Assembly: GCF_031769215.1 (NCBI RefSeq)
Contig: NW_026782328.1
Coordinates: 1,116,001 to 1,180,000 of the forward strand
Origin: Ylistrum balloti
Lineage: Eukaryota
Direction: 5' to 3'
Length of the DNA stretch: 64,000 nucleotides
In this document: in pieces, positions 2,269-64,000 of the stretch
How positions within the stretch are numbered: position 1 is the first letter of the stretch
How the letters are laid out: each line of letters starts with the position of its first letter
Position numbers and translations under genes: made by a program
The notes under the pieces: model-generated
The model's input: only the letters and a program-made list of their open reading frames with translations
Told to the model about the DNA's origin: nothing
The model's database searches: none

Positions 2269-2299
2269 TGCATAGAACCTTGCTTTTCTATGAAACAAA

Positions 2300-30600: not shown

Positions 30601-33600
30601 TTACGTTTGTCAACCTGTTGGTTCCATTGTTTCAACACAGATCTCATTCGAGAACTTGACATTGACCTCGGTTTACGTGGCGGTTGTCGTCGAATGAAAT
30701 GTTCCCAAACATCTTTCTATTTTTGTTTTAGGCCATATAGTGACGAGTGACAGGATATAAGACTTTAATAACAGCCGATCAATTGACATATCGCTAAAAC
30801 ATTTAGACCACATGTATCAAAGAAGACTCATTTTAATTTCTCACCTTTCTGAGAGATAGGTAAAAATTGCATGTAACATTATCTTATTCAGAAGTACCAG
30901 GTAAATTGTTATGAAATTATATTTTTGATTTGTTATTGATAATGGACCTTTTTCACGGTATTAGTTTTCCATTTTCCACAGTTTAAACACCCATGACCAC
31001 ACGGTCGGAAAGTCAAAGGTAAAATTCAACTGCATTAATTGTTTTTTCATGGTTGCGTTTTCTGTTGATTGCAGTATTAATAACAAACCCATGACCTGAT
31101 TCTCATACAACTTCCACATGTTTTTTCCTTGTATAACAAACATTTCAAATGCCGAGATTGACTCCTTATTTATATTAAGCGTGGTTTTTGCGCTCTATTG
31201 TAGGGATGCCTTCATTCTTACATTAGCAAACCAGGCTACCAGTGTGTTTGGTGGGTTTGTTATATTCTCTGCGCTAGGTTTTATGGCCCATCAGGCAAAT
31301 CTGCCTATTACAGAAGTTTCAAAATCCGGTAAGTGTTGGAAGTTAAATCATTCAGATATTTTAAGATATTTGATAGTTTTTCTTATCTAATATACCATTT
31401 ACTTGCACTTTACATAAAGATTTAGAACGACTTCTTTTTCAAAATTGAATCAATATTTTTTGTAACATTCTATTGTCAAACACGTAAAATATTAAAAAGA
31501 CAATAATTCCTTATACAATATTTATCTAGAATCAATAATAATAAAACAACGATTGCTTCTGTCATTTCTGTCATTAGGTCCAGGCTTAGGTTTTGTGGCT
31601 TACCCCATGGCTGTTTCACAGATGCCTGTATCCAACGTCTGGGCAGTATTGTTTTTTACAACTATGGTAACGCTGGGATTGGACACTATGGTAAGATGTT
31701 AGCAATAATATTATTACTATTCTGTACATGTGAAAAGATGTATGGTAAAATATTAGGATCATTATATGTATATGTTGTGATGGCGTACCGGTAAAACAAG
31801 TATATTGGTTAAATTGTAGTTTCTTTTTCTTTTTCTTTATTTCTCTGAAAATGGGGAGGTAGGTAGGAGGTTCTTAACAAAAGTTTAAACCAAAAAGAAT
31901 GCGGTATATTTTATGATATTCATGAAATGGGCAATGCTTTCATCTATCAAATTTTACGTTTTTCTTTTATCTAAAACTGATCATAAACAATAACCACCCC
32001 GTACCCCACACTCCCACTGACTTAACAATCTTTACATTATTCATGGCTAGACGATTTGTCCCCATAGATGCCTAGTTTAAGGCATGAATAGGGCACCAGT
32101 CAAAATGGCCTTCATTTATCATTTGTGTTTTCTATTATTTCTTCTTTCTTTTAAAGCCAAGATCATTTTTCACATCTTTTCAGCAGTTTTAGATTGGGCC
32201 ATGGCAATAAACCTTCTTGTTCATTATATTTCAGTTTGGGCTTATTGAAGCTGAATTTGACTTTTTTGAAGATTGCTTCCCTTTCTTGAAAAAGAGACAA
32301 ACAATATCAAGAATAGCTCTCTCGTCAATATGCGTGCTACTATCATTACCTTTCTGTACACAGGTATGTTTGCGTTTGTTTTCTGAAATATATACATATA
32401 TAAGAATATACGGGAAATAATAAGTTACAGTATCAACTACGCAGATAGATAAACTGAATGAAGATTCGTGATGTCCAATAGGTAAAAGCAGAAAATCCAC
32501 GTTCTTTAAAACAAATTATATTATGAGTAGCAATAACATATAAGCGAATATCAATTATAGCAGTTTTTATCAGTTCATTTATATCATGTCATATTATTTA
32601 TTTTATTTATTTGTGATATATATGTTCTGACAGGCGTTTGTTGTAAAGCAATGATAAAAGAAATTTAGTAGGAATCATGTTAAGATACTACTTTCTTTTA
32701 GGGTGGCGTGTTCCTTTTCCAGCTGGCTGACTGGTATATCTATACCTTTGCTCCGATGTTCTTTACATCAATAGAGTGCATCACGGTAGCCTGGGTTTAC
32801 GGTACGTTTTTCGTTTTTGGGAGACGATTTATACATATATTCCATTTTTGTTACAGACGATGTGAAAGTCGAACTTGAAAAGTTTTGTTTGCAGAAACGA
32901 TTTGCAAGTTCACGGGATTTGTTTTAATGACTGTTTTCCATCAATTTATCTTCTAAACCCATTTTGATTATATTTGCGCTAGCATGCCAGCAAAAAGTAG
33001 AAGTAAGAGCAAACCCCATTTATTGTGGGATTTAAGTGAGCTTTGAATCTGACACTTAAATTCCTATTTGCACTAGAAAAAGACCCATTTTATTTGCATA
33101 TTCCCTTTCAAAATGAATCACGAACAAATGTAACTAATTCTAGAAACATCACTTTAACTCAAAATAGAAAGTAGGTAACCCGTGTGCTTAAAAACTGTGA
33201 TAAGGAATCAACAACATTGAAAAATAGACTTGAGAAATTCATTAAATATAAAATCTTTTATTACTATGTTTACATCTTGTATAAGACCAACTCCGGAACA
33301 TATTAATGTATTTTTGGATAACTTTGATAATGAAGATAAACATTTTTAAAATCTATACACTTATACGCAGAAAGAGTATTTAACTGTTTACGGAGGAGAC
33401 ATCGCATTAGAAAATAATAAAGCATTCAATATTACACATTAAACTCCCCATCTTATTTAAGGGATGTTGAAAGTTCTTTTATTAATGGTGTTACGGATTT
33501 AATACATCCTCCCAGGAAACATGGAATTTCTAATCAATCATTATACCTAACAGAAAATCATATTGATAGTTATTAACCTTTTACGCTAAATACATTTTAT

Positions 33601-36600
33601 TAATCTGATTTCTTTCTTGCAAACATTACATCATTATCCCAAATGAAAAAGTTTCGAATTAATCAATACATCAGAGTCAACTAGACATTTGTAAAACCAA
33701 ATGTTCAGAAAAATCAGGCAAAGGAACATTTATATAATACGTCAGTTGAAAAATGATATGTAATTGTGAATATCTGTCATCCCTTCTTAGTGTACCCATA
33801 CTATCAACTCTATTTAGTATGAATATCACTTGCATTAGAGTTTTCATGGTAGTTGGCAATTCGATGATAACCTCAATGCAAATATTCATAAAAATTCATT
33901 TTGACAATAGGATGATTCTTATGTAATATGTTAACGATATGTAATTACTCATTTCACTGTAACTGCAACACGAATACAAAAACAAAAAACCAAAAACAAG
34001 AACAAACAAACAAAAAACAAAAACGATTTATCAAATATGTTAAAAATATTCAAATGATAGAATTTTAATCTATAGATAATCGATGAATGATGTGAATGAA
34101 TGCTGCATGGTTGAAATTCAATAAGGACCCGGGAGAAACGATCCATGTCAGTAGTATGGACCGTAGAGATGTTGATCCTCGGTAGAATCTTTGGATTCTA
34201 GCTATGTAACACTGATATTCTTTATGGTGATTTTGATATCGGATTTACCTCCCCTGGATGATTAGAATGGTACAATGAATATCATTGAGCAATTTAACTT
34301 TCAGTACAAAAATGTATGATATAAATCAAGTAATTTTGTTTTTTGTAATTTGTATGTTAATAATTGTATTTTTTATTGTTTATTTGTATCTTCAGCTGGA
34401 GGCGGACTATTAAGGGCAAGGCTTGTTGTCCATGGTTTTGTTTACACAATTAAATTCGTTGAAATAAAAATGAAAATAGAAATCAAACAAACATATAACG
34501 CTACTCGATGATCTCCTTCCCAGGTGCTGAGAGGTTCTCTACGGACGTGGAATTGATGATCGGAAGAAGAGTACCTGGATATATCAAATTTTGTTGGTGT
34601 TCCCTCTCGCCTCTTGTCTTATTTGTACGCGTTTTTTTTTATCAACTAAAATCATTTCCATTTGAGGTGTAATGTTTCCAATATATGTATGCAATTTTTT
34701 TAGGCTTGTGTACCTTCATGATAATTGCACAACCTGATTTCTGAGTTTCCTTTGTTAAAAAACGCGTTGGTCAATTATGTCTTTCAATTGGCCAACAGAT
34801 GATTTGACGATCTTGTTTTCGAAACAAGCCATATGATTTTTTTTTCTGAAAGCTGCAACAAAACACTTATGGTATCTTGGGTAATGTTTTACAAAAGACC
34901 TTGACAAATGGGTAAACCTGGTCTTCACATTAGCTGCTGTTTGGTCCAAATACAATTTGTTTGGCCGATCTTCACACAGCCCCAACTGTTCTTTAGGTTA
35001 AAAAGAAAGATTTCAGCACGGACTTCACATAAAATCAACAGTTATTTGGACAAAATAAAAGTTTTAGCACGGTCTAACATTAGCTGCTATTTGTTTCCAT
35101 TGGCATATGAATTCGCACGGTTTTGCTGAACATAACTGTTGTGTCCTTTTATGTTTCCCCCGCATAACCCTTAACAATGCTGTATACTTGAATGTGCTCA
35201 ATAGGAATGAAGACAAACGAATACTTTATATCAGTCTATCGGTACCAGCAATGAGTATTCCCTTAAAAATTTCTATTGATCGCCAAATAGTCATTTATAC
35301 TGATTTTACTTCTTATAATGCCCATGTGTTTATTGTAATTAAATCAATTTTCAAGATCAAATATGATAAGGATACATTTTTAAACGTCCCACTTGAGAAT
35401 AAATATATAAATTTTAAATCTTGTATATTAAGTTGTCATTCAATTACAATAAATGTTACTATAATAAAAAGTTAATTTTTACATATAGGTGGTAATGATG
35501 GCTGGATTTGTATCATATGTACCACCGACATATGGGGACTATGTATACCCTGACTGGGTGTCTGGAGCAGGCTGGACATACGCCATTCTACCTAATGTAT
35601 TTTTTATTGTTTATTTGTATCTTCAGCTGGAGGCGGACTATTAAGGGCAAGGCCTGTTGTCCATTGTTTTGTTTACACAATTAAATTCGTTGAAATAAAA
35701 ATGAAAATAGAAATCAAACAAACATATGACATTACTCGATGATCTCCTTCCCAGGTGCTGAGAGGTTCTCTACGGACGTGGAATTGATGATCGGAAGAAG
35801 AGTACCTGGATATATCAAATTTTGTTGGTGTTCCCTCTCGCCTCTTGTCTTATTTGTACGCGTTTTTTTTTATCAACTAAAATAATTTCCATTTGAGGTG
35901 TAATGTTTCCAATATATGTATGCAATTTTTTTAGGCTTGTGTACCTTCATGATAATTGCACAACCTGATTTCTGAGTTTCCTTTGTTAAAAAACGCGTTG
36001 GTCAATTATGTCTTTCAATTGGCCAACAGATGATTTGACGATCTTGTTTTCGAAACAAGCCATATGATTTTTTTTTCTGAAAGCTGCAACAAAACACTTT
36101 AAGTAGCTTATGGTATCTTGGGTAATGTTTTACAAAAGACCTTGACAAATGGGTAAACCTGGTCTTCACATTAGCTGCTGTTTGGTCCAAATACAATTTG
36201 TTTGGCCGATCTTCACATAGCCCCAACTGTTCTTTAGGTTAAAAAGAAAGATTTCAGCACGGACTTCACATAAAATCAACAGTTATTTGGACAAAATAAA
36301 AGTTTTAGCACGGTCTAACATTAGCTGCTATTTGTTTCCATTGACATAGGAATTCGCACGGTTTTGCTGAACATAACTGTTGTGTCCTTTTATGTTTCCC
36401 CCGCATAACCCTTAACAATGCTGTATACTTGAATGTGCTCAATAGGAATGAAGACAAACGAATACTTTATATCAGTCTATCGGTACCAGCAATGAGTATC
36501 GTGTAACTGACTTCCCTTAAAAATTTCTATTGATCGCCAAATAGTCATTTATACTGATTTTACTTCTTATAATGCCCATGTGTTTATTGTAATTAAATCA

Positions 36601-37338
36601 ATTTTCAAGATCAGATATGATAAGGATACATTTTTAAACGTCCCACTTGAGAATAAATATATAAATTTTAAATCTTGTATATTAAGTTGTCATTCAATTA
36701 CAATAAATGTTACTATAATAAAAAGTTAATTTTTACATATAGGTGGTAATGATGGCTGGATTTGTATCATATGTACCACCGACATATGGGGACTATGTAT
36801 ACCCTGACTGGGTGTCTGGAGCAGGCTGGACATACGCCATTCTACCTGCATTACCGTTTATAGCTGTAGGCATCAAAGTCATCTTCGACTCTCCAGGGGA
36901 AACACTGTTTCAAGTAAGATAATATCTTATTTTTTGTTTTTCGCTATTACTATTTATGTGTTATTAATGTCAGAGCTTTACAGGTAAACAATACATTATG
37001 TTTCATGCTTAAATGACGTCAAAAGACGGTAACGGCAATCTTAAACTCGACTACAAGTTCTAGTTTACTAAGAATTAGAAATGTATGTAAAGTGTTTAAA
37101 ATGTACCGCAACATTGATTTATAAATCCGTCTTATAAAACATAACGATTACTGACATTTCGTTATAGAAACTACGTCAGTCGACGAATCCAACACCAGAC
37201 TGGCAACCAGCAGAAAACAAAGTCGATTACAGGGTCATCCTCTGTGAGAAACAAGGGAACTTCAGACAACGTTTTCTTGCGAACCTCGGTTGCTTTCCCA
37301 GTAAGCCGACATACCAAGACGATCATACTGTCGTATAA
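24672..37338 (+). CDS. SLC6 family transporter, paralog B (13 coding exons, 661 aa; exon 11 and part of exon 12 duplicated)
   Basis: Exons 24672-24831, 25539-25670, 26455-26866, 27333-27465, 27657-27791, 30205-30308, 31204-31328, 31578-31690, 32235-32363, 32702-32801, exon 11 at 34524-34624 or 35755-35855, 36743-36913, 37168-37338. Sum 1986 nt, open frame. Same exon lengths and phases as paralog A except exon 3 (+3 nt). GC donor in intron 1. Confidence 0.93.
27900..29975 (+). mobile_element. Degenerate Penelope-like element (Naiad-type architecture inferred) in SLC6-B intron 5
   Basis: Interrupted frames give [75 protein letters not shown] (YIDD motif), [13 protein letters not shown]. The RT is followed directly by the shared 3' tail. 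Confidence 0.8.
33200..34470 (+). mobile_element. CR1/L2-like LINE 3' relic in SLC6-B intron 10
   Basis: [21 protein letters not shown] remnant of the post-RT region. 3' tail GGAGGCGGACTATTAAGGGCAAGG..TTAAATTCGTTGAAATAAAA. Heavily mutated; boundaries approximate. Confidence 0.55.
34365..36847 (+). repeat. Direct tandem duplication of ~1.23 kb inside SLC6-B (copy 1 ~34365-35593, copy 2 ~35596-36847)
   Basis: Near-identical copies of the LINE tail, exon 11, intron 11 and the first 105 nt of exon 12. They differ by a few SNPs and two small indels (~10 and ~12-13 bp). The junction CTACCT-AA-TGTATTTTTT lies inside exon 12. Confidence 0.92.
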
Positions 37339-42257: not shown

Positions 42258-45200
42258 TCATTGGTAGGAAAGATCGATTCCGTGTTCTTTCATATACTTG
42301 TCGTAAAGAGCATCAAACCTTTCGCTCTGTGCTACGGTGAAATAAGACTTCCAGTTGCCTACACAACCTGTAAAAAGAGTTCGCCAAAAAACAAAATGTT
42401 AGGATGAAGCTTAGGTCACATTTCTTATCAAATAAGTATATGAAAAGTATATTACATGTATCATAATCTAAAACACATCAATAAACTTTACGAATGCTTG
42501 CGTTGAATATGTTTAGAACAACTTTATATTAAAGTGTGATTTTCTTTAAAGCCTCTACTTATGATGTATGTCTACTGAACTGAAACAATCATGCACACCA
42601 TTGTAACTAATAAAATAGGTTTCAACTGTTACCTTTCCTGTAAATCGGTAGCCTTCCATCCTTTCTGTTATCTTTCCATATCTCAGTTTTTCCTGCGTCT
42701 GTTTCGTGTTCCTTTCGCATTTGTTCAAATTGAACTGCTTTTTCTACATCACGTGTAAATGATTCTGATCGTTCAAGCTGAAGGAAGTCTACTAACTTAA
42801 GTATAGTGCCATATGTATTCTGAAAAAAGATGACGAGAAGTTGTACGGAAGTTAGAGTAATAATTTGATGTTCCTCGTGTGGTTTGACTCGTCTGTCATT
42901 GTGTAATAACTAATAACATCACATCTATTGTTGTTTTACAAAATTCCTGTAAGTTTTTTAGTAGAGGACAACATAATGATTGCTTTCAACTATCACGATA
43001 AGATGATTCAGACCAGATCAAAAGGATCTCGATTGCTTAATTTATAGTGAGGAATATCGACCGCAGCCAAGTTGAAAATAAAAAAAATTAAGATAGATGC
43101 TGATAATCAGAATCTTTCAGATTATTTTCAATATAAATTCAGAAATGGAAAGAGTCAATGATAAATTACGATGGCTGATTGATAAGTTGTGAGGTTTGTA
43201 TTGAAGAAGTTAAGCAGAGACATTCGTTTTCAGCTCTACTATTTCCTGACTTTTTAAAGGTTGTGTTGAAGAAGACTGGTGTTCTTTGATCAGTTTACGT
43301 CGAAGAGGTAGCACAACAAGGCAATTGCTTTTGCAAAATGGACAAAATCGCTGAGAGAGCAGTGATCTAATATTGGAAATAGAAAGATCTGGCACCTAAA
43401 GATAGTATGGTAGCAACACTAGGGAACAATGTCCCTTCATATGCTACAGTGAAATGGTGGGTGGCGAAACTTCAGCGTGGCCGACAGAGCCTTGGAATGA
43501 CGCCCGTCCTGGAAGGTCTGTAACTGTTACAAACCCAGAAATGGTAAACAAAATCCATGATAGTGTTATGGCTGACAGCCGAGGTACAGGGAGACATGTA
43601 GACAGTGCAGTTGGGAATTCACAGGAAAGAGTACATTCCATTCTTATGAAAGATCTTGCAGTGAGAGATCTCACCAAGATTTCTGACAGTTGATCTTGCG
43701 CCATCAGATTTTCATCTATTTTCAAGGTAGAAAAAGGCCATTTCCGATACCCACTTTCCGTCAGATGGTGATACATGCAGTGGAGTACTTTCTGTACGTT
43801 CAAGAAAAGGACTTCTTTAAAATGACATTGGGGATCTTTAACATTGCTGGCTCATAACTTATCAATCAGCCCCGGTGAAATGTATCATAAACCTTTTCAT
43901 ACTTACATAGATTGTTGAAACCAAGGAGGTGCCTAACAATCATAGCTGCTTTAAATCATGTAAACGTATCGTACAGGTTACGAAACACATCGTGGACAGT
44001 ACATCCTTCATTACATAAAAACAGTTCGCTGATTCATTTTAGATGGTAACTAAATATCCACACCAGTAATGATTTTTTGATTGATAGCAACATTAGTATT
44101 CAAATGACAAACCTGTTTGATTTCTTCATATTGAAGGGAAAGAATTTGTAAGTCTTTATTTGAGTGTTTGGCATTCTGCCAACCTCTGACGTATGAGAAC
44201 CAATTGCCTCCGTATCCTGCAACTGGAATGATTAAAAAAAGAGAGCGTCATTTTTCTCAAATTTTATTTTTAAAATGTCTCAAAAACATTAAACGTCAAC
44301 TCTGGATCATAGCATATGTCAATTTTTCATGGTTTGGTTAAAGTAGAATAAAACGATCGTCACGTGTTTAAAGGCTATCCATTCGATAGGACAGGATAAA
44401 GTGAAAATCAAGTCTTGAATTTTCGCCAAAGAGGATTTTATTTTAATCATAACATGTAAAATTTTACGATTTAAGGAGGTGTGAAGGTAATGTTTGTTTG
44501 ATATCATTCAATATAGAATTAAGTTTAACGTAATATATCTAACTTTTGACTATTTCTGCTTATGATTTTGAATAGGACATTTGGAAGAAATTTCGATCGT
44601 GGACTACATTTCCTCAAAGAGACCATTTTAGATATTTCAAAATACTGTATATGATGGCAAGCATCAAGAATGCTTCAAGCGTAATGTAATATCTATTATG
44701 TGCTATAAATGAAACAATCCTATTTAAACTTTGCATAACATATTAAATACGAAGGAAAATGCTTGTTACAATTTACGAACTTTGATTACCATGATTTCAT
44801 CATCTTCAATAAATCCCATAACATTGATTCTGAATTCTATATTTTTCAACTGATATCTCGCAGTACTGCACATAAGACTTTGTGGGAAAATGAAAAAACA
44901 AAAATTACATTCATCTGACAGGCAGAAATCCAAAAATCCGTTGAAATCTCCTTCGTATATCGCCGTTTTATCTCCTTTGCAAAATTCATAATGCGATGTT
45001 ATCGTATCTTTCGGATTTCGCAGAACATGCACAATTTTCACTTGACCCAGTTTTGCCATTTTTGGGATTAATGGATAGGTAAGGTGAGTGTGTATAGTTC
45101 GGGGCGATTCAAGGTTTTTAAGTTCGCTTGGGGAATGAAAATCTATCATGTGTGGAGTTCCTCTGTATTGTGTGTTTTTTGTCCGCAACATCTGTATGAT

Positions 45201-45906
45201 GTTGTATACCCAGTGGGTTCCTGAAGCAGGAAAAGGTCATAATTATACATCAGAAATGATATCAATCCTCTCATCGTTCCAAATTAACACAAGCGCAATA
45301 AAATGATAAATAAGTGCGTGGAGTTGATCGAAACCACCAACTGATGAAGCCGCTAGAGTTTTGACAAGGCTTTTCGAAACAAATATAAAACGATTGCCTT
45401 CACCTTAACCTTCAACCATGAAACGCGAATTCGCACCTTAAACATACCAACCGAATTTACGTGTACGGTTATTTTCATCCAAATTAAGATTGAAGTTCGA
45501 TTAAATCCAAACTTCATTGGTTTAAACATAATATAGTGAGAATAAAATAATGTTATGCAACTAGCAATGAAATGGTATCCTCTTCAATGTAAATGATAAA
45601 GATTAAATATGTCCATAATCTTCACCAGTTTATGTTTGATAATCAGAACAAAATTAAAAATCACGTTACATGTATATAATTAAGTTTTTAAGAAAAATTC
45701 AGCTAGAGCGGTGGAACAGAGAAGATCAATTTACCTGATTTTGGATAAGTACACAACAGCACATCATCAGACCGGAGGACTAAAGAAGATACTTCTTCAA
45801 GATGGTCTCCAATATTGCCTGGAATATCTGGTATGAATTTCAAACCTTTGTAAAGCTTGAAACGAAATTTGTTTCCCTGAACGTCTGTTATTGCTTTCGT
45901 CTGCAT
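42258..45906 (-). CDS. Cytosolic sulfotransferase, paralog B (5 exons, 296 aa)
   Basis: Minus-strand exons 45906-45735, 45220-44909, 44222-44113, 42819-42633, 42367-42258; sum 891 nt, open frame. Same motifs as paralog A (TYPKSGTHW, RTIHTHL, RNPKDTITS, RKGCVGNWK). Confidence 0.93.
43169..43874 (+). mobile_element. Internally deleted mariner element with both TIRs, in SULT-B intron 3
   Basis: Left TIR TA|CGATGGCTGATTGATAAGTTGTGAG; right TIR (reverse complement) CCGGGGCTGATTGATAAGTTATGAG. Internal remnants MDKIAERAVI, LGNNVPSYATVKWW, DARPGRSVTVTNPEMVNKIHD, DLAPSDFHLF. Confidence 0.85.
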
Positions 45907-46999
45907 TATGAATGCCTTTAAACGAAATGGAAATCTGGAGTTAGGTCTAGATGTTGTCTCATATACTTTTTCGTATATATCATTGAACCATAAACAAGAA
46001 CTGAATATAAATAAGTGAATATATTAAGTAGAGCGAGTATCGCGTACATGACACCGCAATTTATTGTATGTTTAAAGTAATACAGCGCTCCATCACTAAA
46101 TGCTAATTATTTTGGAACATTGATAAATATATATGAATATTCTTTGATATGTTTAGATTTAATTAAAAAGTAGAAGGCATAGTTGACTATATCACGACAT
46201 TTCAGTCTACGTCATACACCAAAGTTTTGAATATGTCATGATACTACAGCAACTTGATGTCGCACAAGGAAACATTGCCCAATGACGTCATTTTGGTCAC
46301 AAAACTTTTCACAATTTCTTCATCAATAATCATCTCTAGAGAACCTTTTTTGTGAGTTTATCGGTCAAATATTAAAATTGGGATATTCTAAACATGCATT
46401 TTAATATCAAATCATTTTAATGTTAACATCATTGGTCCGGGAGGTGATTGACAAATTAAAAATGGAAAACTTATCATAGAGAAATCGGTATCATTTTGTT
46501 TTTGTTGCTTACATTTCATGCATATATGTATTGTTTTGAGAGTATGACAATACTTATTTGGATTGAGAAAGAATGAAAACATTGAAATAGCGGTTAATGA
46601 AACAATTTATACCTACCTCTCCGAAACAAACGCTTTATTTCCACTACATTTTTCGTCTAAATAATCATGTTATGCTCGTTTCGCTGTTTTGGGATTTGAA
46701 TTCAGATTTCGTCACTATTTCATCGTTTTCTTGTTTTGTCAGAATGTCACGATGAAGAGATAATATCTTTAATGGAGCTTTCCAACTTAATTTAGCTAAA
46801 GGCATAAACGTACGACTGTGTGTCGCCTATGTTATTCATTCCAGATAACATATTAAGTTCTCTGTACATAAATAAACATGGTTACACATGTTTGGAAAAG
46901 AAGTTCTATTTTTATTGTAATATTAAAAAATAAATGACATTTTAGTATATCTAAATACATGAAAAACAGGATACATTGCTAAACTCGTTACAAATTATG

Positions 47000-47935: not shown

Positions 47936-48997
47936 CAGATTGTAAAGCCTGGACTGATTTCTCAAACCTTCTCTCATTGTTCATTCTCTATTAGCACAGT
48001 GTTAACATACCAAACCACGAGGATGTACTACTATTGTTCTTGGTGAAAAAGAAGACAGACATATCATGCAAACGTGTTCAACTCTTTCCAGTATATCGAA
48101 AACATTTAGTTCCATTAAAAGTATTAGAAATAACCATTGTCCCTTTGTCCTTTGGACGTGATGAACATCTTGCATGAGAAATAAATCTGGAACACAACAC
48201 TGTGTTCTCAGAAACATTTCTTCTTTTTTTGTCCATCGGGCGAATGTCGTACTTGACGGTATATATATGTTCATTTCTGAGTTCTGAGATCTGATCACAG
48301 GCTTAAGAGAATATTCTACTACTGTGGTCAGAAGAAATGGAACTATTTGTTTCAAGGACGAATAAGCCATATAGGATTCCAGATTAGGTATTTTAATGTG
48401 TAAACCAACCAATCTATCATTTAGCGTTCTAGTTAGAATATTGATTAAGCATTTTCTCCCAAAACCATATATTTGTTTTTCATTTTTGGCACTATATTCT
48501 TCCTTATGTACATGTTTGGACTTCAATTCCTATCTGTAAACGTACGACTACAGAGGTTACCAATAGCACATACAAACTGTTGTATTTGCTTCTTAGGACA
48601 TTTTACAAATCCACATCTACCGAATGCCAGATTCAAGCTATTTTTCTCTTAACAGTAAATCGCAGCTTCAGGCACAAATATATATAAAATGCGACTACGG
48701 ATTTTTACCAGGTACTCGGTGTTTTATGGTCTTTGAATGAGGTATTTTACATCAAAATATCTCATTTTGCACAAAGGATAACCTTTCAATCAAATCATAC
48801 AAATGTACTTATATATTATCAGCTTATGTGATATGAATACAATTTGAAACAGTATTGCGGGGAAAAAATACTTTTTTAAAGTTACACGTGTTTCTAGATG
48901 AAACATTAATGACTCCTTGGATTACAATATACATTACGATGTATAATTTGAAAAAATAAATTATACTGAATGAATATCTTGTTTCCACGGCACGAAA

Positions 48998-49130
48998 ATG
49001 GATCAAATGTCAAAAATTGCAGAGTAAAATCGAGATAGTATTTCAAGCAGGACCAAATGGGGCAATAAACTACAGGGTCTGATCTCAGTTCTTGGAATGA
49101 CATTGCGATTTGGAAATATATATTGTATGA
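48998..49130 (+). pseudogene. Relic of SLC6 exon 1
   Basis: MDQMSKIAE*NRDSISSRTKWGNKLQGLISVLGMTLRFGNI: in-frame stop and loss of WRFPY. No downstream exon 2 was found by eye. Confidence 0.85.
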
Positions 49131-50049
49131 ATCAAAATATATATTGTATGAATTAAGAGTAAAATTGCAATGGGAATATATTTGGGAAAGAGTCGTGTGC
49201 ATTTATGAGAATGAAATCTTTCGGTATGTGTTTACTTCATTCAATATATATGTAAACTGTAAGTACACAAGGTTGTATTTCAAGAATGTGTACCATTTGT
49301 TGAAAGTTTTTATGCAGATTGTAATGACAACATTAAGAGGGAAGATTTTAGAAAGTGTATATGTAGATAAGAAAATTATCGTAACTTTATAGATATTTAA
49401 TTGAACAAAAGTTGGTTTAAACAATTCTAAATATTACCTTTTATATATTTTATCTATATTTCTAAAGTAATGTACATATAATGGAAAGTGAATCTAGCGA
49501 TATATTGAATGGGAAATAAATAACGTTTTGAAAGGCTTTATTGATCATACAACTTCTGTATCCACGTGTCTAAGTTATGCAATGGCGCACCACCATCTGT
49601 CGTCCATCTGTTTATTATCCATAGACAGCTGGTCATTTATGTTCACCTGTGTGTTGTTTGTTCAGTATTCATGATTGCAGGTGTTAGGCACTGCTGTTGG
49701 ACTTTAAGTCCTCAGAGTTTGACATAGTTTGCATATCAGATTTTAATTCATTAAAATAGTGACACGATTTAGAATATACATATTTATTTGACGTTATTCT
49801 AAATTAACCAGATATTTAGAAATTATGCCATTCATTTAAACATGGGAACATTGCTTCTGCTCATAAAGAGTTTAACTTTCCTTTCAATCATTCGTTTCCT
49901 AGACTTTAAAATTTAGGCCCATGGCACCATAGGCGAAAATGTGCCATTCACTTGTGTGTCTACTGTACAGTTTCATACAATCACACTAGGAAGCACCGTT
50001 TCTTGCCCTCTGTTCCTCACTTTTCAATACATGCTTATTCACGCACCTG

Positions 50050-54061: not shown

Positions 54062-57000
54062 ATGGAAGACAGTGATATCCAAATAGTTGATGTCAGAGGT
54101 TCTCATACAGACTACATCAAACAGCAGGTGAACCAACAAACAAAACTGGTAAGACGATCATAGAATTTATCAGCATTTCAAACCGTAGCTGAGTTGGCTG
54201 ATAACAGAAGAACTTTCCTATAAATGTTTCTGGCGGGAACAAATGTCGTTTAATAATGGAGAAGATTTGATTTCCCATCAAGTTAAGTACAGTGTATTTC
54301 ATATAAAGATAAGGGAACATGTTTGCATATTTGTTTACTTTATACTATATGTTACTGCTTGACATACATAGATATCGAAAAAAGACAGTAAAATGCTTAA
54401 AGTTATTCCTGTTAGTTGGATAGGTTTCATTCACCTTATTGCTTAGCTGTGAACTGAATATACAAATTCCTATCGTGATACATATACCGATCATGTCATC
54501 GCATCCCAAAAACATAATCAAATAACATACTTTTATCTGATATTTTCTAACATTCAAACATTGACGTCGCTTCGACAAGCTGGCTTCTTTGTACATTGTC
54601 ATGAAATTACAATTAGGCCAATATTTTTACTGTCACATCTTTTTTCATCGTAATGAAAAATCTGTATATAATATCAAATTTCATTCCGTGCATTAGTGTA
54701 GTGTTTCAATCATTTGTATTAAAAATTAGGTTACCGTGACTGAAGATAATCGTTTGTTTTACTCATTTTCTTATTTCCCTGGAATTACTTTTAGTTTTCA
54801 AATTGAGTTAAACTTCATCATTTGGTATAAATGTGTGTTAGGACCTTTAGGTATACCATTAAAAGTCATGGAATATTTAACGGCATCCCTTTTTCTTCTC
54901 TTTTATACACATCGACGTACTTTACATTACAAATATAGAGACTCTTTTCTTCATTCGGCTGTAAATCTTTGGAATTCCCTACCTGTGCATGTTAAAGAAA
55001 ACTTTATACTTTATACTCTGAAGAATTACTTAAATGGCCTTAATTCCAATATTCCAGGATATTTCTATGTTGGTTCTAGACGAGGACAAATTTATCATTC
55101 CAGATTACGAATGCAATGTAGTTCACGTAAGGGTCATATTTTCAGTAAAAATCTAGTGGATAGTCCTATATGTGATTGTGGTATGGGAAACGAAACAACC
55201 GAACATTTCTTTTTATCTTGTTCTAATCATAACAGATGTAGACATCTTTTTCTTTCTCATCTTCTTCCCATTGAATCTGTAGACGTCCTTCTTTTTGGCG
55301 ATACATTTATATCATTTGCAGAAAATGAAGCTATATTTGTTAGTGTCCACACTTTCATATTAAAGACTAAACGATTTGAGCATTAGGAAGAGTTACTGCC
55401 AACACTACTGTACTCCTTCCATATACGCGAAACTTTTTACTTTCATGAGTTTTTGTATATCTGTATTAACTAAAAGTACAGCAGTTTGTAGTACTACATG
55501 TATAATTAACAATTTATTAAGATACCCATATGTTACTCTGGATGAACTTGCATTCCTTATCATATTGTATTTGTCGATCTTACATAATGTATACATACTA
55601 TACTACTCATTCTATCCACTTTCCTTACTTCATTTCCCTCTCCTAAACTCTTTTCACTTTCCCTTTCCCAAATTCGATCAGTCGCTGCCTGCTTGTTACT
55701 TCTAAGGAGACAGATTAACATAAGTTTATAACTTCTTTCTGAATCCTTTTTGTATAACATCCTTTGAATGAAATGCCATTGCCAAAATAAAATAAAGTTT
55801 AAAACAAATATAGAGACAATTAGTTTTGTCTAGTATGACTTCATTGGCACAGGGAGTAGATGACCCACTAGCTATCTATGATATTGACGAGGTGGTGGAG
55901 AGGTACAGAAAATGGTACAAGCTGCTTCCAAGGGTGGAACTATTCTACGGTAATGTTATTTTCAATTAACTTGTAAACAACGTTTTCGGTTCAAATATCG
56001 CTTAACTATTTCCATTTTCGTAATAGCTACACTTACATTGGAATAAAAATAATATTTATCTCCTACATTTTAACAATATATATTAAAATTGCAATAAACG
56101 AGAAACGACATTTAACAAAATTGAAGACATTGACAATATAATTAGAAGAGGCATCTCCTCAAATCAAAACTTTCAACTCTTTTTTTTCAATAGCTCTGAA
56201 GTGCAACAATGATAAGAACATCGTGGATATCTTAGTAACACTGGGAAGCAGTTTTGACTGTGCCAGCAAGGTATTGCTTTTTATTCCGATCATAACTGAT
56301 GACCACAGAACATCTTATTAAATCATGATCTACTTGAAAGCACTGTATAACAGTAAATTTTCCTTGTCGATCTTATTGTTTACTTTGAAAGAAACAAGTT
56401 ATACCACAGCATATACAAACAGACAGGGCTTGCAATGAACGAAGTCACAATATCTTTTTATTCGTCCTTTTGATTCCCTTGTACAAAATGTTTTAGAGAT
56501 ACGTTTAACAAAAACCCATAGGACCTTAGAATTTAAATGCTTTATATCATGTGATATATTTGTCTGACTTATTCTGGCATCAAAAACACGTAACACAAGT
56601 ATTTTAACCAATGGAAATCATCGATATTTACACGTCATTGAAACTGAAACGAAAAAGACATGAAAACTAGATAAGATGTGAACATATTTCTATAACCATT
56701 TGATCCAAGTTGGTGGGGCCTCCCTAAAGATTATTTTAGAGATATACAAGTGAAAAGCACTTTTTAAATATAACTTGTATATACAGAATAAGTATGTACA
56801 ACTGACTGATCTTTCTAGGACTCGTTAGTGATTTTATTTTATTTATTTATTATTATTTTTTTTGTTTTTTGTATTCTGAAAGGCGACTTGAGAAAAATCC
56901 AAATCGGTCGAAGTAAGTGTCAAAAAACTAGGTGAGGTTATCACTAGCTCAAAGGTTATAAACATTTTGTTCGTTTCCAGGGCGAGATTCAACAGATACT

Positions 57001-60000
57001 TGAATTAGGAGTTGATCCCTCTCGTATCATCTATGCCAATCCAATTAAACAAAACACACATCTTACCTATGCCAAACAGCACAATGTTGACCTGATGACC
57101 TTTGACAGTGAAGAGGAATTGATCAAGATCAAGTTATTACATGGATCCGCAAGGCAAGTTGTTGCATAAATTATTTTGGTAACAGCTCAAGAACAGATCT
57201 TCACTGCACTACACCTTGACTAAATAAATATGTTTCCGGTTGCGGAGAAGGAGTTTTCGGAATTTCAGTGTTGTATAATTGGCATAATAGTATGGAAGTA
57301 TTATATCATATGACAGGTTTGCATGAAAGAAATACACTGTTTCGACGTTGTTTGAAAGTATTACACAATGTTACGGGTTTGTACGAAAATGTCATACTTT
57401 GTCACTTTGGTACGGGTTGGTATTGAAGTATTGCTCTATATTACGGAATTGTATGAACATATTGCACTATACATGTGTTACGGGTCAGTATAAAAGGAAG
57501 GCGTCAGTGCGTACGGCTAACTAAACGACATTATCATGTGTATGGTTACTGATGAAGACAAAACTCGGAAAGGTGAAGTAAAATTTAATGTGAAATTATT
57601 AACTATGTTACGTATTTGTATAAAGAATGAACACTTTATTACAGGTTTGTGCGAAAGTATTTCACTGTGCTCCGGATTTGTATAAAGTATCACACTATAT
57701 TACAGATTGCTGTTACGATTTCGACCAACACAAAAATATGAAGCGCATTATGATTTGGGACAGAAATTCGGTTGCAATTTCAATGAAGCAAGGGACTTAC
57801 TCATATCTGCAAAAGAAATAGGCTTAGAAATCATTGGTGTGAGGTAAGTGTTTAAATGAAAAGTGAATAAAATAGGAGATTAATATGATAAATACTTTTC
57901 AGTGTCATGTTTTACGGCATTTTATGGTTTTTAGTAATTTAAAACATGGTTTATGAACCAAAATTGATGTATACAGGTCTCACCATCTTTTATCAAATTA
58001 AAGACATACTCCCGGCAAATACAATAAGTTTCGTAATGATCTAACCATCCAAGTGTACGGCTTTAACATGATAACTTTCGGAGATTAGGATGTTATCTAG
58101 CCATGCAACTAGCTGTAACCAGTTCTAGGTTAATCGCCTAGCCTTTCTTACGGACCAATTCTAAGCCATACTTCTACATACCTATACTATGCGTTATAAC
58201 CACGTGATATGTTAAAGACTATGACTTGATAAACTGGCTTCGCCACTTTCATTAAGGACAGTTAGCTGTACTGTCGTACCCACCATTCTCTCCCATTCAA
58301 GCCACTTTAACATTTGTTCTTGGTATTCTCAATCGGGGCCTTATCACTTCGGTGTAACTTAGGTCCTGCCCACAATTCTTCACAGGAGGAACTGCACCAC
58401 ATTTATATGTAAGGCTGCTTCCTGGAACCTCGTAAACCCGTTACTCAACCTGAACTAGAATCTACCTGGGCACAGCTCTGTTCTGCCATAGACCCACCGG
58501 AATTACGACATACGTCATGGCCGGCATAGGTCATGTGCAGTGAATGAGAGCTAGTACCCTTGTTGTGGCCAAGGTTATATAATTAAATCCTTTAAATCTA
58601 ACTCCTTTGCTTGTTGTTTCATATACCGGGATAAAATATCCCATATCTTTACTGCTTTACCTGGAGGCGTAAGTAGTCCAATTTTCATATAATTCCATGT
58701 TTTAGTTTCCATGTTGGAAGTGACTGTCTCAGTACAGAAGCTTTTTCATCGTCGATCAAGGAAGCAAGGAAAATATTTGATATAGGACTACAGGTCGGCT
58801 GTGCCATGAAGATCCTCGACATTGGAGGAGGATACCGGGGAAGAGATGTTGAAAGCCCGACTATTGAAGAGGTACGGAAGAAAGGTTTACTGTTTAATAG
58901 TTAAGTATAATGTACAAATCAACATAACATCAATTGCATGTATCAATATAGACAGTAATGAATTGGTACAATGTCTCTACTGATTTAAACAGGATGTCAT
59001 TTGTTTTACATCGGGTTCATAATATACAGATACAGCTCACTATACAACATGAAAATAACTGGCCTGGAAGAATCGTTATACAAACTGTAAGGATGAAACA
59101 TCTGAATGATGAGGTTAGGTACATATGAAATGCGTCTTTTGCACAGTCCTTGGTAACCTGTGATGGTATATGATAACATTTAGCTTTGCGGAGTACTGAG
59201 GCTCGCATACATCACTTATTTACTCTTCAATAAAGGTGGAAACATGTTAAGGTTAAACACGTGTTTTCTGATAGCTAAAACTACAGAATTTTTGTAACCA
59301 TATTATACTCACGTCCTCCCATTTCGCCATATTATTGTCACGTTTCTTTCTTGATTTTTGGCCTTTGCCATCACTGCTAAAATTCCGATTTCAGTATTTT
59401 TAGGCGTCAAATGTTGGGAAATGTATTGCGAAGCTTATATCTATTTAGAATAAATCAATTTTCATGCTATGAATAGAATTTAAATTGACTAACGCGGAAC
59501 TACTATTTACAAACAAACATATATCGTCTAGTAATACGTTAAGGGTTTCTTTATCTATGATTATTCAGTTGTAAGAAAACTGGCATTCGTCAGTAGGCCT
59601 ATTTGTAAACTACATGTTAACCATAGAGTTATTATTGGAAGAATTGGGTAACGGTGAGAAATTTCAAAGTATACATACAAAGCATCTTCATGTTTCTTTC
59701 GTCATACTGACGAGTATTTTGTCATTGTGCAGCACGGTGTACAATGGCATTCTACGTTTAGATTATATTTCATTTGTCATAAAGAATGCAGACATCATTA
59801 ACCAGTGTCTGGAGGAGTATTTCCCGGAAACAGAGGGGGTGAAAATTATCGCTGAGCCAGGACGCTACCTTGTGACATCTGCTGCTAGTATTGCAGCACA
59901 TATTATAGGGCGAAAGCTTGTTTATAACAAAGGTAAGTGAAATAAATGCGGCGTGTTTCGTTGATAAATGCCCGCCGCGATAGTTCACATTTGAGAGAAA

Positions 60001-62885
60001 TTCAATAGTTAGTTTGTGCACGATCTATGCGTCTAACCATTCGTGACAAACAGGTCATGTTTCCTAATTTGATATATAAGTATAGTTTGTATATATGTAT
60101 AGATAAAGGTTCAATGATCACTTTCACCACTTTTGATTTTAACAAAGACTGAAAATTCTGGATTCCGAGACCCCGACTTCGGAAATGTAACATTACTTAG
60201 ATTGATCATGATTAATATGGCAAGTGTTGTCGATGAAGCAGAAGACGCTTACCCCTCCAGAACACCTGGTCTACTTCTCTTTGTGCTTTTTAGGTGTCCC
60301 TTTGCAAATATTTCTTTACTTCATATTCTGCCCTAGTTTTATTCAATTTGAGTGTGGATTATGATTATNNNNNNNNNNNNNNNNNNNNNNNNNNNNNNNN
60401 NNNNNNNNNNNNNNNNNNNNNNNNNNNNNNNNNNNNNNNNNNNNNNNNNNNNNNNNNNNNNNNNNNNNNNNNNNNNNNNNNNNNNNNNNNNNNNNNNNNA
60501 TTGTAAAGATGATTTGTAACCATGTGATGGTGATGCACACTTGTTCCATCGAAAGGCGATTGCCTAAAACAACATAGACTGAAAACTATGTATAAAGTGT
60601 GCATTCAGTTTGATAATATTGTGTACTTAATGAATGACAAATCCTCTTATGATCGTGTATGATGTAAATATTAAGGAAATACTGGCCTGTCAAAAGAGTT
60701 AAAACTCAAATCGATAAAACTGGAGTAAAATAAATCACAAAAACAATACTTTGTACTTTTTGATACGTTACAAATGGCGGAACACAGTATAAATCACAAA
60801 TGCCGAAACAAAAAAACCAATCCTCCAAAATAAAGTTTAGTGAAAGGTTGGATTAGCCAATATGTAATGGAAATATCAAAATTTTGAATCAAACTATCAA
60901 AGATTTTCCACGAGTGTCAATATGCATGTAATTTCAGATAGAACTAATATTGAGCACGTTATGTACTACATCAATGAAGGAAAGTATGGATCGTTTTGTC
61001 GGTTAGTTGCAATCAATGATGAATTTGAAATGTCACCGGTTACTCAACAGGTATGTATCTAAGGATTCTTATATATACCTTAAACATTTATTTCTAAGAA
61101 TCCATTTCTAGTAAATGTTGTTCTGTGCACTTAGTAAAAGCTAAAACATTAGAAGCGATGGATACATACTTCCACATATCGGTTTTGTGAGTTACCATAT
61201 ACCTGTATCCAGAAAATGAATGACTAGTCTCGGTGTAAGACAATGTTATCATTTCTTTCTTTACTTAATTAGAGTTAAAGATATCAATTATGCAACATTC
61301 CTTCGTATTAAGTTTTAAAAAAAAGAAAAGCCAGAAAAACACACAAATATTAGTTATATTATAATCATTATTTATTGTCTTTGTATATATGCATCTTTCA
61401 ATTACAACCTTAAGCAGTTCATCAGGGGATAGATTACTTTTGCACAATGTATATTTGTGAGTTACTTCTGGTGCAAAAAAAAATGTATAATACAATGAAG
61501 CGGTTTGGTATGATAAAAAAAAATAGACAATGTATCGGTATTCACCATAATAATAGTCAAATATTTATCATGATGAGAAATAGTGCGTTTGTCATGTTTG
61601 GCCTGTTGAAAAGTACTTAGCCATTTCTGTATTTAGTATATATATATATGTATATGGACACTTTTTTAAGTGTTACATGTTGACTGTAATTGCAACTGTT
61701 AACTGTTGGGGGGGGGGGGGATAATTATGAATGTTTTCCCTTATTAAAAGTATCACATTGCTTGCTTCATATATTTAGAATGAAAAAGTAACTGCTTTTT
61801 TATACACTGTTACAATTTATTTTCAAAATTACACTCGCCTACGCCAGTTATCTGCTATTTTGTTAGTCACCACTGTCACTCACCCTCGTGTTGTACAAAG
61901 AGGTCCATTACAAATAGATGCAATAATGACTAATAATTTCTGCAGTTTTTTTAACTATCTACATACGAGAAAAAAATAAGAATACAAATAGGGGCCCCAC
62001 CATTAGGCCCATGGTATTGCTGACGAGACCTAGATGGACGTCGCAGCTATATGATATCATTTAAGACATTTTGACTCTACTTACCTAATTCAAAGTTTGT
62101 ATGAAAAGGTGCATTTGTTCAACCTCTAAAACTAAAACAATCAATGATTTATTTCTACTGTTTCAAACAATATTCCATCAGAATGAAAAAAAGTAAAAAG
62201 GAAAGATGTTTGAACTTGCTGCGACCATTGTGTGGTGATAATGGGATACGTGGCATTGAGTGACCACTACTTAGTATCTTGTACTTGTTGCAACCCTTGT
62301 GTGGTGATAACGTGATACATGGCATTTAGTGACCTCTACTTAGTATCTTGTACTTGTTGCAACCCTTGTGTGGTGATAACGTGATACGTGGCATTGAGTG
62401 ACCACTACTTAGTATCAACTTTCACTTTCCTTTCTGATGATATTGCTGTAGAGGTTATGTTCTATTTTTCAAATAGAAAGAAATGCAAAACAAAAATGCT
62501 CACAAGGTCGTAATTGGAATCCCAAATCAAACATATCAAGGGAAAATATGGACGAGAGAAATGCGTGGAAAACAATACAAAGAATAAAGATTAACAACGG
62601 AGTACATAACAGTTAACGTTCACTGTAGGATTTCAACTACAAAAGTAGCATTCTTAGGGATATGTTTTTCTCACTCTAGGATGACACAAGAAGATATAAC
62701 AGTACCGTTTGGGGTCCAACTTGTGCTGGGTCGGATTGTCTAACGTCTGAGATATCTTTACCACTGATGGAGGTCGGAGAATGCCTGCAAATACCTTACA
62801 CCGGAGCTTATACATTCAGTCGCTCAACTAACTTTAATAGCATGCCACGACCAAAATTCTTTTACTTCTGCTCACGTGACATTTG
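54062..62885 (+). CDS. Ornithine decarboxylase-like fold-III PLP decarboxylase (at least 401 aa; final exon unresolved; substrate probably not ornithine)
   Basis: Exons 54059/54062-54148, 55853-55949, 56194-56270, 56981-57153, 57706-57843, 58706-58871, 59785-59932, 60938-61050, 62680-62885; all phases consistent. Motifs FYALKCN (PLP Lys), FDCASK, IYANP, TFDSEEEL, KFG, SFHVGS, LDIGGG, AEPGRY, YGSF, WGPTC, GAYT. A possible upstream exon ends at 52086 (ATG TCG AAG|GT, in frame). Confidence 0.92.
54920..55800 (+). mobile_element. CR1/L2-like LINE 3' end in decarboxylase intron
   Basis: ORF 54736-55386: SFLHSAVNLWNSLP, HSRLRMQCS, SPICDCGMGNETTEHFFLSC (C-x-C..H..C knuckle), LLFGD, KTKRF. Followed by a 3' UTR ending in AATAAAATAAAGTTTAAAAC. 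Confidence 0.85.
60215..60368 (+). mobile_element. Isolated PLE 3' tail abutting the assembly gap
   Basis: GCAGAAGACGCTTACCCCTCCAGAACACCTGGTCTACTTCTC..CCTAGTTTTATTCAATTTGAG matches the tails at 697-850 (-) and 29830-29975 (+). Confidence 0.6.
60369..60499. other. Assembly gap (131 N)
   Basis: Run of N inside the intron between decarboxylase exons 59785-59932 and 60938-61050. Confidence 1.
62228..62416. repeat. 69-bp minisatellite, about 2.7 copies
   Basis: TTGTGTGGTGATAA..GGCATTGAGTGACCACTACTTAGTATC.. starts at 62228, 62297 and 62366. Confidence 0.92.
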
Positions 62886-64000
62886 GTACGTACGTCATGA
62901 GGTTCAAAACATCAATTTTACTCAAGGTATGAAGAATCAGTGAACATAAACAGCTGACCATTGTTGTTGTGGGATTTTTTTTTTTTTTTTTTGTTTTTGT
63001 TTGTTTTGTTTCTTTTATGACAATAAATTAACTTTACACTTAAGGGAGTACATGAAGACGTGTCTGAGCATTGGTGATCAGTCAGAACTGATGAAATAAG
63101 AATATGAACAGAGAAAATGAGACCGGTACGTATTCAAACTTTCCGATCGATTTACTATTAATGTTAGTATATTTCATCACACAGAACATTAACTTGCTGG
63201 TAGTTGTAAGTATTCTATTTAAAGTTCCTGGACATACATTTCTTTCTAAAGGTTACACAGGACGGAGAGACACTGGTAACAAATGTTCCTTTGTATATGC
63301 ATCGCCTTATAATCCATGGGTCATTGTTATTACACCACGTTCACGTTAGCTGGCATACTACAGCTTGATTATTAAACGGAATGTATTCTTACGTTCGGAT
63401 GTCAAGCACGTTAGCACCTGGAAATCGTTAAAGCTTTTTCTAAACTGGAGTTTCCATTATGAAAAATATATGTACAGACTTTCCAAAGTCATCATTTGAG
63501 GATAGTATACGTAGCCTATGTCGTTTAACGAAGAGTGTTTCAAAATTTATATATATTTATCTTTATTTCATGAAATCCCAGACACGTGTCTCGCATGTCG
63601 ATGATATCAAAATTATTTAGGATAGGTTACTACTCATTGGTGTAACTATATTTCACCTGTAATTAATCATTCATACTGCAATAGTAGCACGTGATTACCG
63701 TTTTTTGTAGGTACCCGTTAACGTTAAAATGCTTTTTGCGTTTTGCCCACTACCATAATGAGAACTGAAATAACTTAACAATATCTATAAAGTTATCACA
63801 TGAACGTCCCGTCTCATGTTATTATTATTACATGTTCTTTGTTCTCTTTTTATTACTGGTGACTTCGTTGTTTATTTGTAATGTATAATCAATAAGGCAA
63901 TAGTTTCAGCAACATAAGTATCGTAAGCTACGTATATAGTAAATCTTGATTTACTCCCGACTTTCTTCAGATGTAATATACACGCTTTCTGTTTCAAGCT

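Follow-up and report, generated by a model that had tools for sequence, protein, structure and literature searches.

A scallop-specific family of ornithine decarboxylase-like genes, represented in Ylistrum balloti, combines invariant catalytic residues with altered substrate-pocket residues

As far as is known, animals use the fold of ornithine decarboxylase (ODC) almost only for putrescine synthesis and its regulation, with the leucine decarboxylase of mouse being the sole characterised exception. Lineage-specific ODC-like paralogs that lack the residues typical of ODC were reportedly described by Ivanov, Firth and Atkins in 2010. Here we examine an ODC-like gene in a stretch of 64,000 nucleotides from the scallop Ylistrum balloti (RefSeq assembly GCF_031769215.1, contig NW_026782328.1, positions 1,116,001 to 1,180,000 of the forward strand), hereafter called the window. 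The gene product, XP_060075944.1 (P0160; 427 residues), carries the NCBI name ‘ornithine decarboxylase-like [Ylistrum balloti]’. Our favoured reading, to which the sequence leads us to give about even credence, is that this protein is an active, pyridoxal phosphate (PLP)-dependent amino-acid decarboxylase of the ODC fold that would no longer use ornithine and that belongs to a scallop-specific family.

The substrate specificity of enzymes with this fold is set by a 3-10 specificity helix and a Cys loop, and in SbnH an Arg of this helix (R304) binds a substrate carboxylate (PMC7857480). The diaminopimelate decarboxylase (DAPDC) of T. maritima uses E315, the equivalent of ODC D361, to bind the distal amine of its substrate, while R285 of the helix and R249 bind the distal carboxylate; when E315 is replaced, activity moves to carboxylate-only or hydrophobic substrates (PMC8277567). 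In ODC, the distal amine forms its salt bridge with D361 (PMC8277567, citing Osterman 1995). Among animal proteins, the mouse paralog Gm853 (ODCrp) is an active leucine decarboxylase that does not use ornithine; it forms dimers and has no antizyme-inhibitor function (PMC5518511, PMC6313458). Planarian ODC1-6 provide a precedent for lineage-specific ODC-like paralogs without ODC residues (PMC5574924).

Gm853 is in our view the precedent that best suggests a mode of action for the scallop protein, although the analogy has limits. All 20 ODC residues, D332 and D361 among them, are retained in Gm853 (PMC5518511), a vertebrate paralog linked to AZIN2, but not in the scallop protein, and the scallop sequences fall among the bivalve ODCs in our tree, away from every vertebrate sequence it contains (Gm853 itself is absent from it). 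The scallop protein resembles the lineage-specific ODC-like paralogs and the antizyme inhibitors AZIN1 and AZIN2 in being an ODC duplicate that has lost ornithine-binding residues and kept those of the antizyme-binding element. It differs from them in its pattern of change, which is concentrated in the substrate pocket and leaves every cofactor and catalytic residue the same in all 13 paralogs. Arg328 of the scallop protein recalls the carboxylate-binding helix Arg of DAPDC and SbnH (PMC8277567, PMC7857480), but these enzymes and FigC/FslC are only distantly related to it. The protein scores 176.4 bits with the NCBIfam DAPDC model TIGR01048 (lysA; cut-off 297.9) and 42 with the FslC model (cut-off 500), and it carries Ala where the D361-equivalent of DAPDC is Glu (PMC8277567).

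With canonical ODC itself (human, mouse and T. brucei, and the scallop proteins P0020 and P0267), the scallop protein shares about 40% identity, its fold, and its PLP-binding and catalytic residues. An earlier note on this DNA, made from the letters alone, had placed an ODC-like enzyme with a rewired substrate site at 60938-62885. That span does contain exons 8 and 9, but the gene has ten exons and most of the residues listed in the note lie upstream (Table 1). The two motifs on which the note was built are where it located them: exon 8 carries YGSFCRLVAINDE, and exon 9 carries the loop WGPTCAGSD, which retains C360 and D364 of the ODC sequence WGPTCDGLD and replaces D361 with Ala. Exon 9 aligns to mouse and human ODC with E-values of about 1e-14 (E=8e-15 for the ODC match in the PDB). 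In an alignment of 30 sequences, numbered by fish ODC, the protein retains K69, D88, E94, K115, R154, K169, G171, H197, S200 and G235-237, together with E274, R277, Y323, C360, D364, G387, Y389 and F397, and so every PLP-contacting or catalytic residue listed in the earlier note is present in both the alignment and the exact exon translation. The residue set of fold-type III enzymes is thus complete (Schiff-base Lys, GGG loop, HxGS, EPGR, and the Cys loop with its following Asp), and exon-wise Pfam searches and precomputed domains recover both the N-terminal barrel (PF02784) and the C-terminal sheet (PF00278). AlphaFold2, run on an alignment of 50 sequences, gives a model with a mean predicted local distance difference test score (pLDDT) of 93 and a predicted template-modelling (TM) score of 0.90, and a Foldseek search with this model matches human ODC (E about 1e-51, TM 0.90-0.93).

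Conservation of the core contrasts with substitutions at the substrate site. The replacement D361A is identical in every alignment made, and at this residue the protein departs from ODC sensu stricto (EC 4.1.1.17). The calls C328R and D332I depend on the register of the specificity helix. MAFFT alignments of 30, 40 and 150 sequences leave the helix ungapped and read it as C327 R328 L329 V330 A331 I332 N333 D334, and the same ungapped register is obtained with a profile-profile alignment by hhalign of 13 scallop paralogs against 27 canonical ODCs. A single pairwise HMMER alignment to human ODC instead introduces a two-residue insertion, pairing the Asp of INDE with D332; a shifted register that keeps D332 receives no support from MAFFT or hhalign. 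With two of the three methods in agreement, we retain the substitutions as the earlier note gave them, so that the canonical residues N327, D332 and H333 correspond to Cys, Ile and Asn. Canonical ODCs read N-C-[IL]-L-[YF]-D-H-A from 327 to 334, and the window protein further differs from them in having Thr in place of M386 and a short C-terminal tail (427 versus 468 residues). In the AlphaFold2 model, a short helix is formed by residues 318-320 of P0160.

The gene is one of a family that we find only in scallops. A search with exon 9 led to the Argopecten paralog P0001, and a word search with P0001 identified 13 full-length proteins and one partial protein named ‘ODC-like’ that share 55-75% identity. 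All derive from Argopecten irradians, Pecten maximus, Mizuhopecten yessoensis or Ylistrum balloti, whereas the next matches fall to about 46%. The family therefore comprises at least 13 paralogs in four species, with 3 to 7 genes per species. All four scallops also encode a canonical ODC of 468 residues that is 90-94% identical across species. The window gene is not orthologous to this canonical gene, whose Ylistrum representative (P0267) is present in the same genome. The earlier note had suggested a phylogeny with ODC and AZIN sequences; in our 54-protein tree, which includes AZIN2-like proteins, the 13 scallop paralogs form a clade with 100/100 support whose long stem branch spans about 1.4 substitutions per site, joined among the bivalve ODCs and separate from canonical ODC. 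The same 13-member clade is recovered in a 19-protein tree, where end branches measure 0.02-0.06 for the canonical scallop ODCs, 0.06-0.47 for the fast-evolving paralogs and 0.33 for the window gene. The statement that this is not a normal ODC consequently holds on three grounds: the absence of D361, the absence of D332 in two of the three alignment methods, and placement in a clade apart from P0267.

Members of the paralog clade and the canonical Ylistrum ODC gene have 10 exons each, and their boundaries coincide in the protein alignment, seven of nine exactly and the other two within a region of insertions and deletions. From this shared structure it follows that the scallop family arose by DNA duplication of canonical ODC. 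Most of the Mizuhopecten members lie in one tandem array (gene models OWF48665-48671 on scaffold NEDP02003435.1, comprising locus L004 and its neighbours); one model in the array is an 820-residue fusion, and short fragments also occur there. The window gene belongs to the dispersed part of the family, and its positional ortholog is Mizuhopecten P0155/P0270 (Myes_b). Synteny supports this orthology: both genes are followed by an 1800-residue immunoglobulin-domain gene on the opposite strand, and their downstream regions give collinear tblastx matches. The gene tree leaves the pair unresolved, and an approximately unbiased test does not reject their pairing (p=0.34).

Conservation within the family is unevenly distributed. 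K69, D88, E94, R154, K169, G171, H197, S200, G235-237, E274, R277, C360, D364, G387, Y389 and F397 are invariant in all 13 paralogs. By contrast, 92 alignment columns show no variation across 27 canonical ODCs, and only six of them are hypervariable among the scallop paralogs (N327, D332, H333, D361, M386 and Y317); the known substrate contacts are among these six. Position 361 is occupied by D, C, A or S in the paralogs, and position 328, which is Trp in 11 of them, is Arg in the remaining two, the window protein and the Mizuhopecten ortholog. Most ortholog groups maintain their own pocket residues, which change from one group to another. A similar loss is seen outside the family in the independent ODC paralogs P0256, P0221, P0233 and P0223 of Dreissena, Gigantopelta and Mercenaria, in which D361 is replaced by Ala or Cys and the other tabulated catalytic residues are kept, except for R277S in the Mercenaria protein.

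Codon alignments of eight loci show that the window protein is under purifying selection. The ratio of nonsynonymous to synonymous substitution rates (dN/dS) is 0.07-0.20 for every pair with a usable dS, and 0.145 between the window gene and its syntenic Mizuhopecten ortholog (dS about 1.3), although these ratios are rough because dS is near saturation (about 1 or more). When only the 13 pocket codons are considered, the five cross-species pairs that are closest to each other give a dN of 0.18-0.25, which is approximately the background rate. The value is 0.2-1.0 in the remaining pairs without the window gene, and comparisons of that gene with all others yield 0.73-1.32. The assertion in the earlier note that the gene is not an obviously dead copy agrees with both these ratios and the invariance of its PLP-binding and catalytic residues across the family.

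An intact core, purifying selection and change focused on the pocket make an active PLP decarboxylase with a non-ornithine substrate the most likely explanation in our judgement. We propose that the canonical ODC gene was duplicated and that the substrate pocket subsequently changed. The protein would be a cytosolic, dimeric, PLP-dependent alpha-decarboxylase of the ODC (alanine-racemase) fold, in which, as in ODC, K69 would form the Schiff base, C360 would protonate C-alpha, and D88, E274, R277 and the GGG loop would hold PLP. The substitutions D361A and D332I would remove the acids that bind the distal amine of ornithine, and the new helix residue Arg328 would redirect the pocket to a non-cationic side chain. 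Given that acids are lost at 361 and 332 and an Arg is gained at 328, we infer that the substrate side chain is probably not cationic, and an anionic one is compatible with these residues. An anionic substrate bearing a carboxylate, sulfinate or sulfonate is our most specific guess for the member with Arg328 and Ala361.

The combination of a perfect core, purifying selection and group-specific pockets is the pattern expected of a fold that has been reused for new amine products. If this interpretation is correct, the family would add new enzymes and metabolites to mollusc biochemistry, such as osmolytes, signalling amines or products of toxin handling, and it would offer a natural series of pocket variants with which to study how specificity is set in the ODC fold. 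The window gene itself is already annotated, and ODC paralogs without ODC residues are already known as a phenomenon. The suggestion of the earlier note that the gene could represent an undescribed activity in animals must therefore be narrowed, given that non-ornithine or residue-lacking ODC paralogs have been reported (PMC6313458, PMC5574924) and that the gene is one of a multigene family. Our literature searches retrieved no paper dealing with scallop ODC-like genes, and a multigene family confined to scallops, its catalytic core invariant and its pocket residues specific to paralog groups, does appear to be undescribed in the searchable literature.

Several observations weigh against a decarboxylase with a new substrate. 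Beyond the dissenting HMMER register and the roughness of the rate ratios noted above, the AlphaFold2 model is a monomer, and its confidence is lowest (about 76) at residues 311-330, which is the specificity-helix stretch. The window gene and its Mizuhopecten ortholog have C327, R328 and A361 in common, encoded by identical codons, but they differ at 10 of the 13 pocket positions, and thus a sharply defined shared substrate is not evident. Moreover, no paralog cluster contains a member from a transcript assembly, whereas the canonical ODC cluster contains one. Finally, the antizyme-binding residues K115, A123, E138, L139 and K141 (PMC4066113) are all present, as K110, A118, E133, L134 and K136 of P0160.

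This last feature bears on the possibility that the protein is a regulatory pseudoenzyme similar to an antizyme inhibitor, which would bind antizyme or ODC monomers and tune polyamine synthesis without useful catalysis. Such a role has been proposed for many independently arisen ODC homologs without ODC residues, and the loss of D361, and probably of D332, means that the protein is not an ODC by the usual 20-residue criterion (PMC5518511). ODC-like paralogs of this kind recur in invertebrates, accounting for five of six planarian ODC homologs (PMC5574924), and the independent losses of D361 in Dreissena, Gigantopelta and Mercenaria are in keeping with this recurrence. However, the antizyme-binding residues do not discriminate between the two roles, since they are invariant or nearly so in all 50 aligned ODC-family proteins and since ODC also depends on L139 to dimerise and to catalyse its reaction (PMC4066113). 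In the 54-protein tree, the AZIN2-like sequences of vertebrates cluster with the ODCs of those animals, far from the scallop clade, and the window gene is not an ortholog of the AZIN2-like proteins sampled. A protein that only binds a partner has no need of K69, C360, F397, the GGG loop, E274 or R277, and yet all are unchanged in 13 paralogs that differ at 25-40% of their positions; these retained residues argue, if indirectly, against a loss of catalysis. Changes focused on substrate contacts and conserved in several ortholog pairs would also better fit ligand specificity. Furthermore, mouse Gm853, although first suspected to be regulatory, does not bind antizyme and has no inhibitory effect on it (PMC5518511, PMC6313458). 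A purely regulatory function is accordingly the leading alternative, one that we take seriously but consider unlikely.

We see a still smaller chance that the protein remains a decarboxylase of basic amino acids (ornithine, lysine or arginine), with D334, E335 or an Asp in a shifted register replacing the lost contacts. Both D334 and E335 remain on the helix, the HMMER alignment pairs D334 with D332, and most paralogs have an acidic residue at 331 and at 334. Moreover, Xenopus ODC2/AZIN2 is a lysine/ornithine decarboxylase (PMC6738921). Set against these points, A361 removes the partner of the distal-amine salt bridge (PMC8277567) and an Arg is added at 328, neither MAFFT nor profile-profile alignment favours the shifted register, and the genome already has a canonical ODC that is highly conserved among scallops.

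Equally doubtful is a PLP reaction other than simple alpha-decarboxylation, such as racemisation or coupled decarboxylation, or the use of a non-proteinogenic or conjugated substrate as in SbnH, FigC and BtrK. The fold accommodates varied substrates, including N-citryl-ornithine and acyl-carrier-bound glutamate (PDB matches; PMC7857480), and the pocket residues of the scallop family are very diverse. However, two residues with a role in decarboxylation by ODC, C360 and F397, show no variation, and the present data give no sign of a different reaction type.

A decaying or silent duplicate without function is very improbable: the absence of transcript-derived members from the paralog clusters, the GC splice donor where paralogs have GT, the long end branch (0.33) and a relic ODC-like exon elsewhere in the window would fit this view, but the catalytic residues are all kept, the donor conforms to the usual GC-AG consensus, and a pseudogene is ruled out by the frame, intact over 10 exons, and by the dN/dS of 0.145 against the syntenic ortholog (dS about 1.3).

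The features of the locus are collected in Table 1. The window consists of AT-rich animal DNA (about 33% GC), and its stop-to-stop translation reveals ODC-like pieces on the + strand between about 54 kb and 62.9 kb. A hand-built eight-exon model, with a start at 55835 and a read-through stop at 62941-62943, was 100% identical to P0160 over 373 residues. It is superseded by the NCBI annotation, in which exon 1 lies further upstream and a tenth exon follows beyond the window. When XP_060075944.1 is mapped back to the locus and the window, nine of its 10 exons fall within the window and together encode residues 1-401 without mismatch, stop or frameshift. The splice sites conform to AG/GT with the single exception of the donor after exon 4, AAG/GCAAGT, whose GC occupies 57154-57155; GT is found at the same site in eight of eight other paralogs compared. 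Intron 7 includes a run of 131 N, and an exon concealed there is ruled out because exons 7 and 8 join exactly and in frame, matching XP_060075944.1. If the exon 9 donor is skipped, the frame continues for 19 codons (62886-62943) to the stop at 62941-62943, and this read-through is a possible alternative C-terminus.

Table 1. Positions of the ODC-like gene, its key codons and neighbouring features, numbered from the first nucleotide of the window
Feature	Position	Strand	Basis
Exon 1, start codon, residues 1-29 of XP_060075944.1	54062..54148	+	Exact protein match
Exon 2, N-terminal strand and helix preceding the barrel	55853..55949	+	Protein match, AG/GT splice sites
Exon 3, ALKCN motif, K69 and D88	56194..56270	+	Alignment, protein match
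K69 codon	56199-56201	+	Exon 3
D88 codon	56256-56258	+	Exon 3
Exon 4, E94 and antizyme-binding-element region, GC donor	56981..57153	+	Pfam PF02784 E=7.6e-15
Exon 5, R154 and K169	57706..57843	+	Alignment, protein match
R154 codon	57716-57718	+	Exon 5
K169 codon	57764-57766	+	Exon 5
Exon 6, FHVGS (H197, S200) and DIGGGY phosphate loop (G235-237)	58706..58871	+	Pfam PF02784 E=4.1e-12
H197 codon	58710-58712	+	Exon 6
GGG loop codons	58824-58832	+	Exon 6
Exon 7, AEPGRY motif (E274, R277)	59785..59932	+	Alignment, protein match
E274 and R277 codons	59854-59865	+	Exon 7
N run, 131 N, within intron 7	60369..60499	.	Flanking exons match protein exactly
Exon 8, Y323 and rewired specificity helix	60938..61050	+	MAFFT, hhalign, protein match
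Y323 codon	60985-60987	+	Exon 8
Helix C327 R328 L329 V330 A331 I332 N333 D334	60997-61020	+	Exon 8
C327 codon	60997-60999	+	Exon 8
R328 codon	61000-61002	+	Exon 8
I332 codon	61012-61014	+	Exon 8
Exon 9, WGPTCAGSD (C360, A361, D364) with G387, Y389 and F397	62680..62885	+	PDB ODC match, Pfam PF00278
C360 codon	62722-62724	+	Exon 9
A361 codon (GCT)	62725-62727	+	Exon 9
D364 codon	62734-62736	+	Exon 9
Y389 codon	62809-62811	+	Exon 9
Exon 10, 25 residues	~64693-64767, past window end	+	Extrapolated position
SLC6 (sodium:neurotransmitter symporter) gene, first of tandem pair	2294-12400 (approximate span)	+	Pfam PF00209
SLC6 (sodium:neurotransmitter symporter) gene, second of tandem pair	24594-37000 (approximate span)	+	Pfam PF00209
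Cytosolic sulfotransferase gene	14612-15004	+	Best solved matches SULT-family enzymes
Cytosolic sulfotransferase gene	42625-46023	-	Best solved matches SULT-family enzymes
Isolated ODC-like fragment, exon 4 only, residues 90-145, 52-62% identity	21352-21527	-	
Stretch resembling first coding exon of SLC6 genes, upstream of ODC-like gene	48977-49153	+	No Pfam match

Upstream of the ODC-like gene, the SLC6 and sulfotransferase genes of the window look like a duplicated block. One SLC6 exon is closest to solved transporters of gamma-aminobutyric acid (GABA), taurine and betaine, and the two sulfotransferase genes are 83% identical over 114 residues. A conjecture to which we assign little probability is that scallop ODC gave rise to a family of specialised decarboxylases making several non-polyamine amines. 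The Arg328/Ala361 member would then act on an amino acid that is acidic or a sulfur oxyacid, with cysteine sulfinate, cysteate, aspartate and glutamate as examples, and in Ylistrum it would cooperate with the SLC6 transporters of GABA/taurine type and the cytosolic sulfotransferases encoded next to it, as a metabolic unit joined by physical linkage. We rejected a conserved gene cluster of this composition. Both gene types are present in the window, but around the Mizuhopecten ortholog and seven other paralogs neither occurs at a distance of up to 10 kb, and conserved linkage is therefore unsupported at the loci tested.

The isolated ODC-like fragment is probably a relic of another paralog copy. 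The stretch that resembles the first coding exon of the SLC6 genes is a possible relic of such an exon, and a similar SLC6-exon relic lies beside another Ylistrum paralog (L002, 30155-30259). Intron 1 of the ODC-like gene contains an open frame of 218 residues on the + strand (54730-55383) with no Pfam match, whose Cys/His-rich tail we take to recall the C-terminus of retroelement ORFs (open reading frames).

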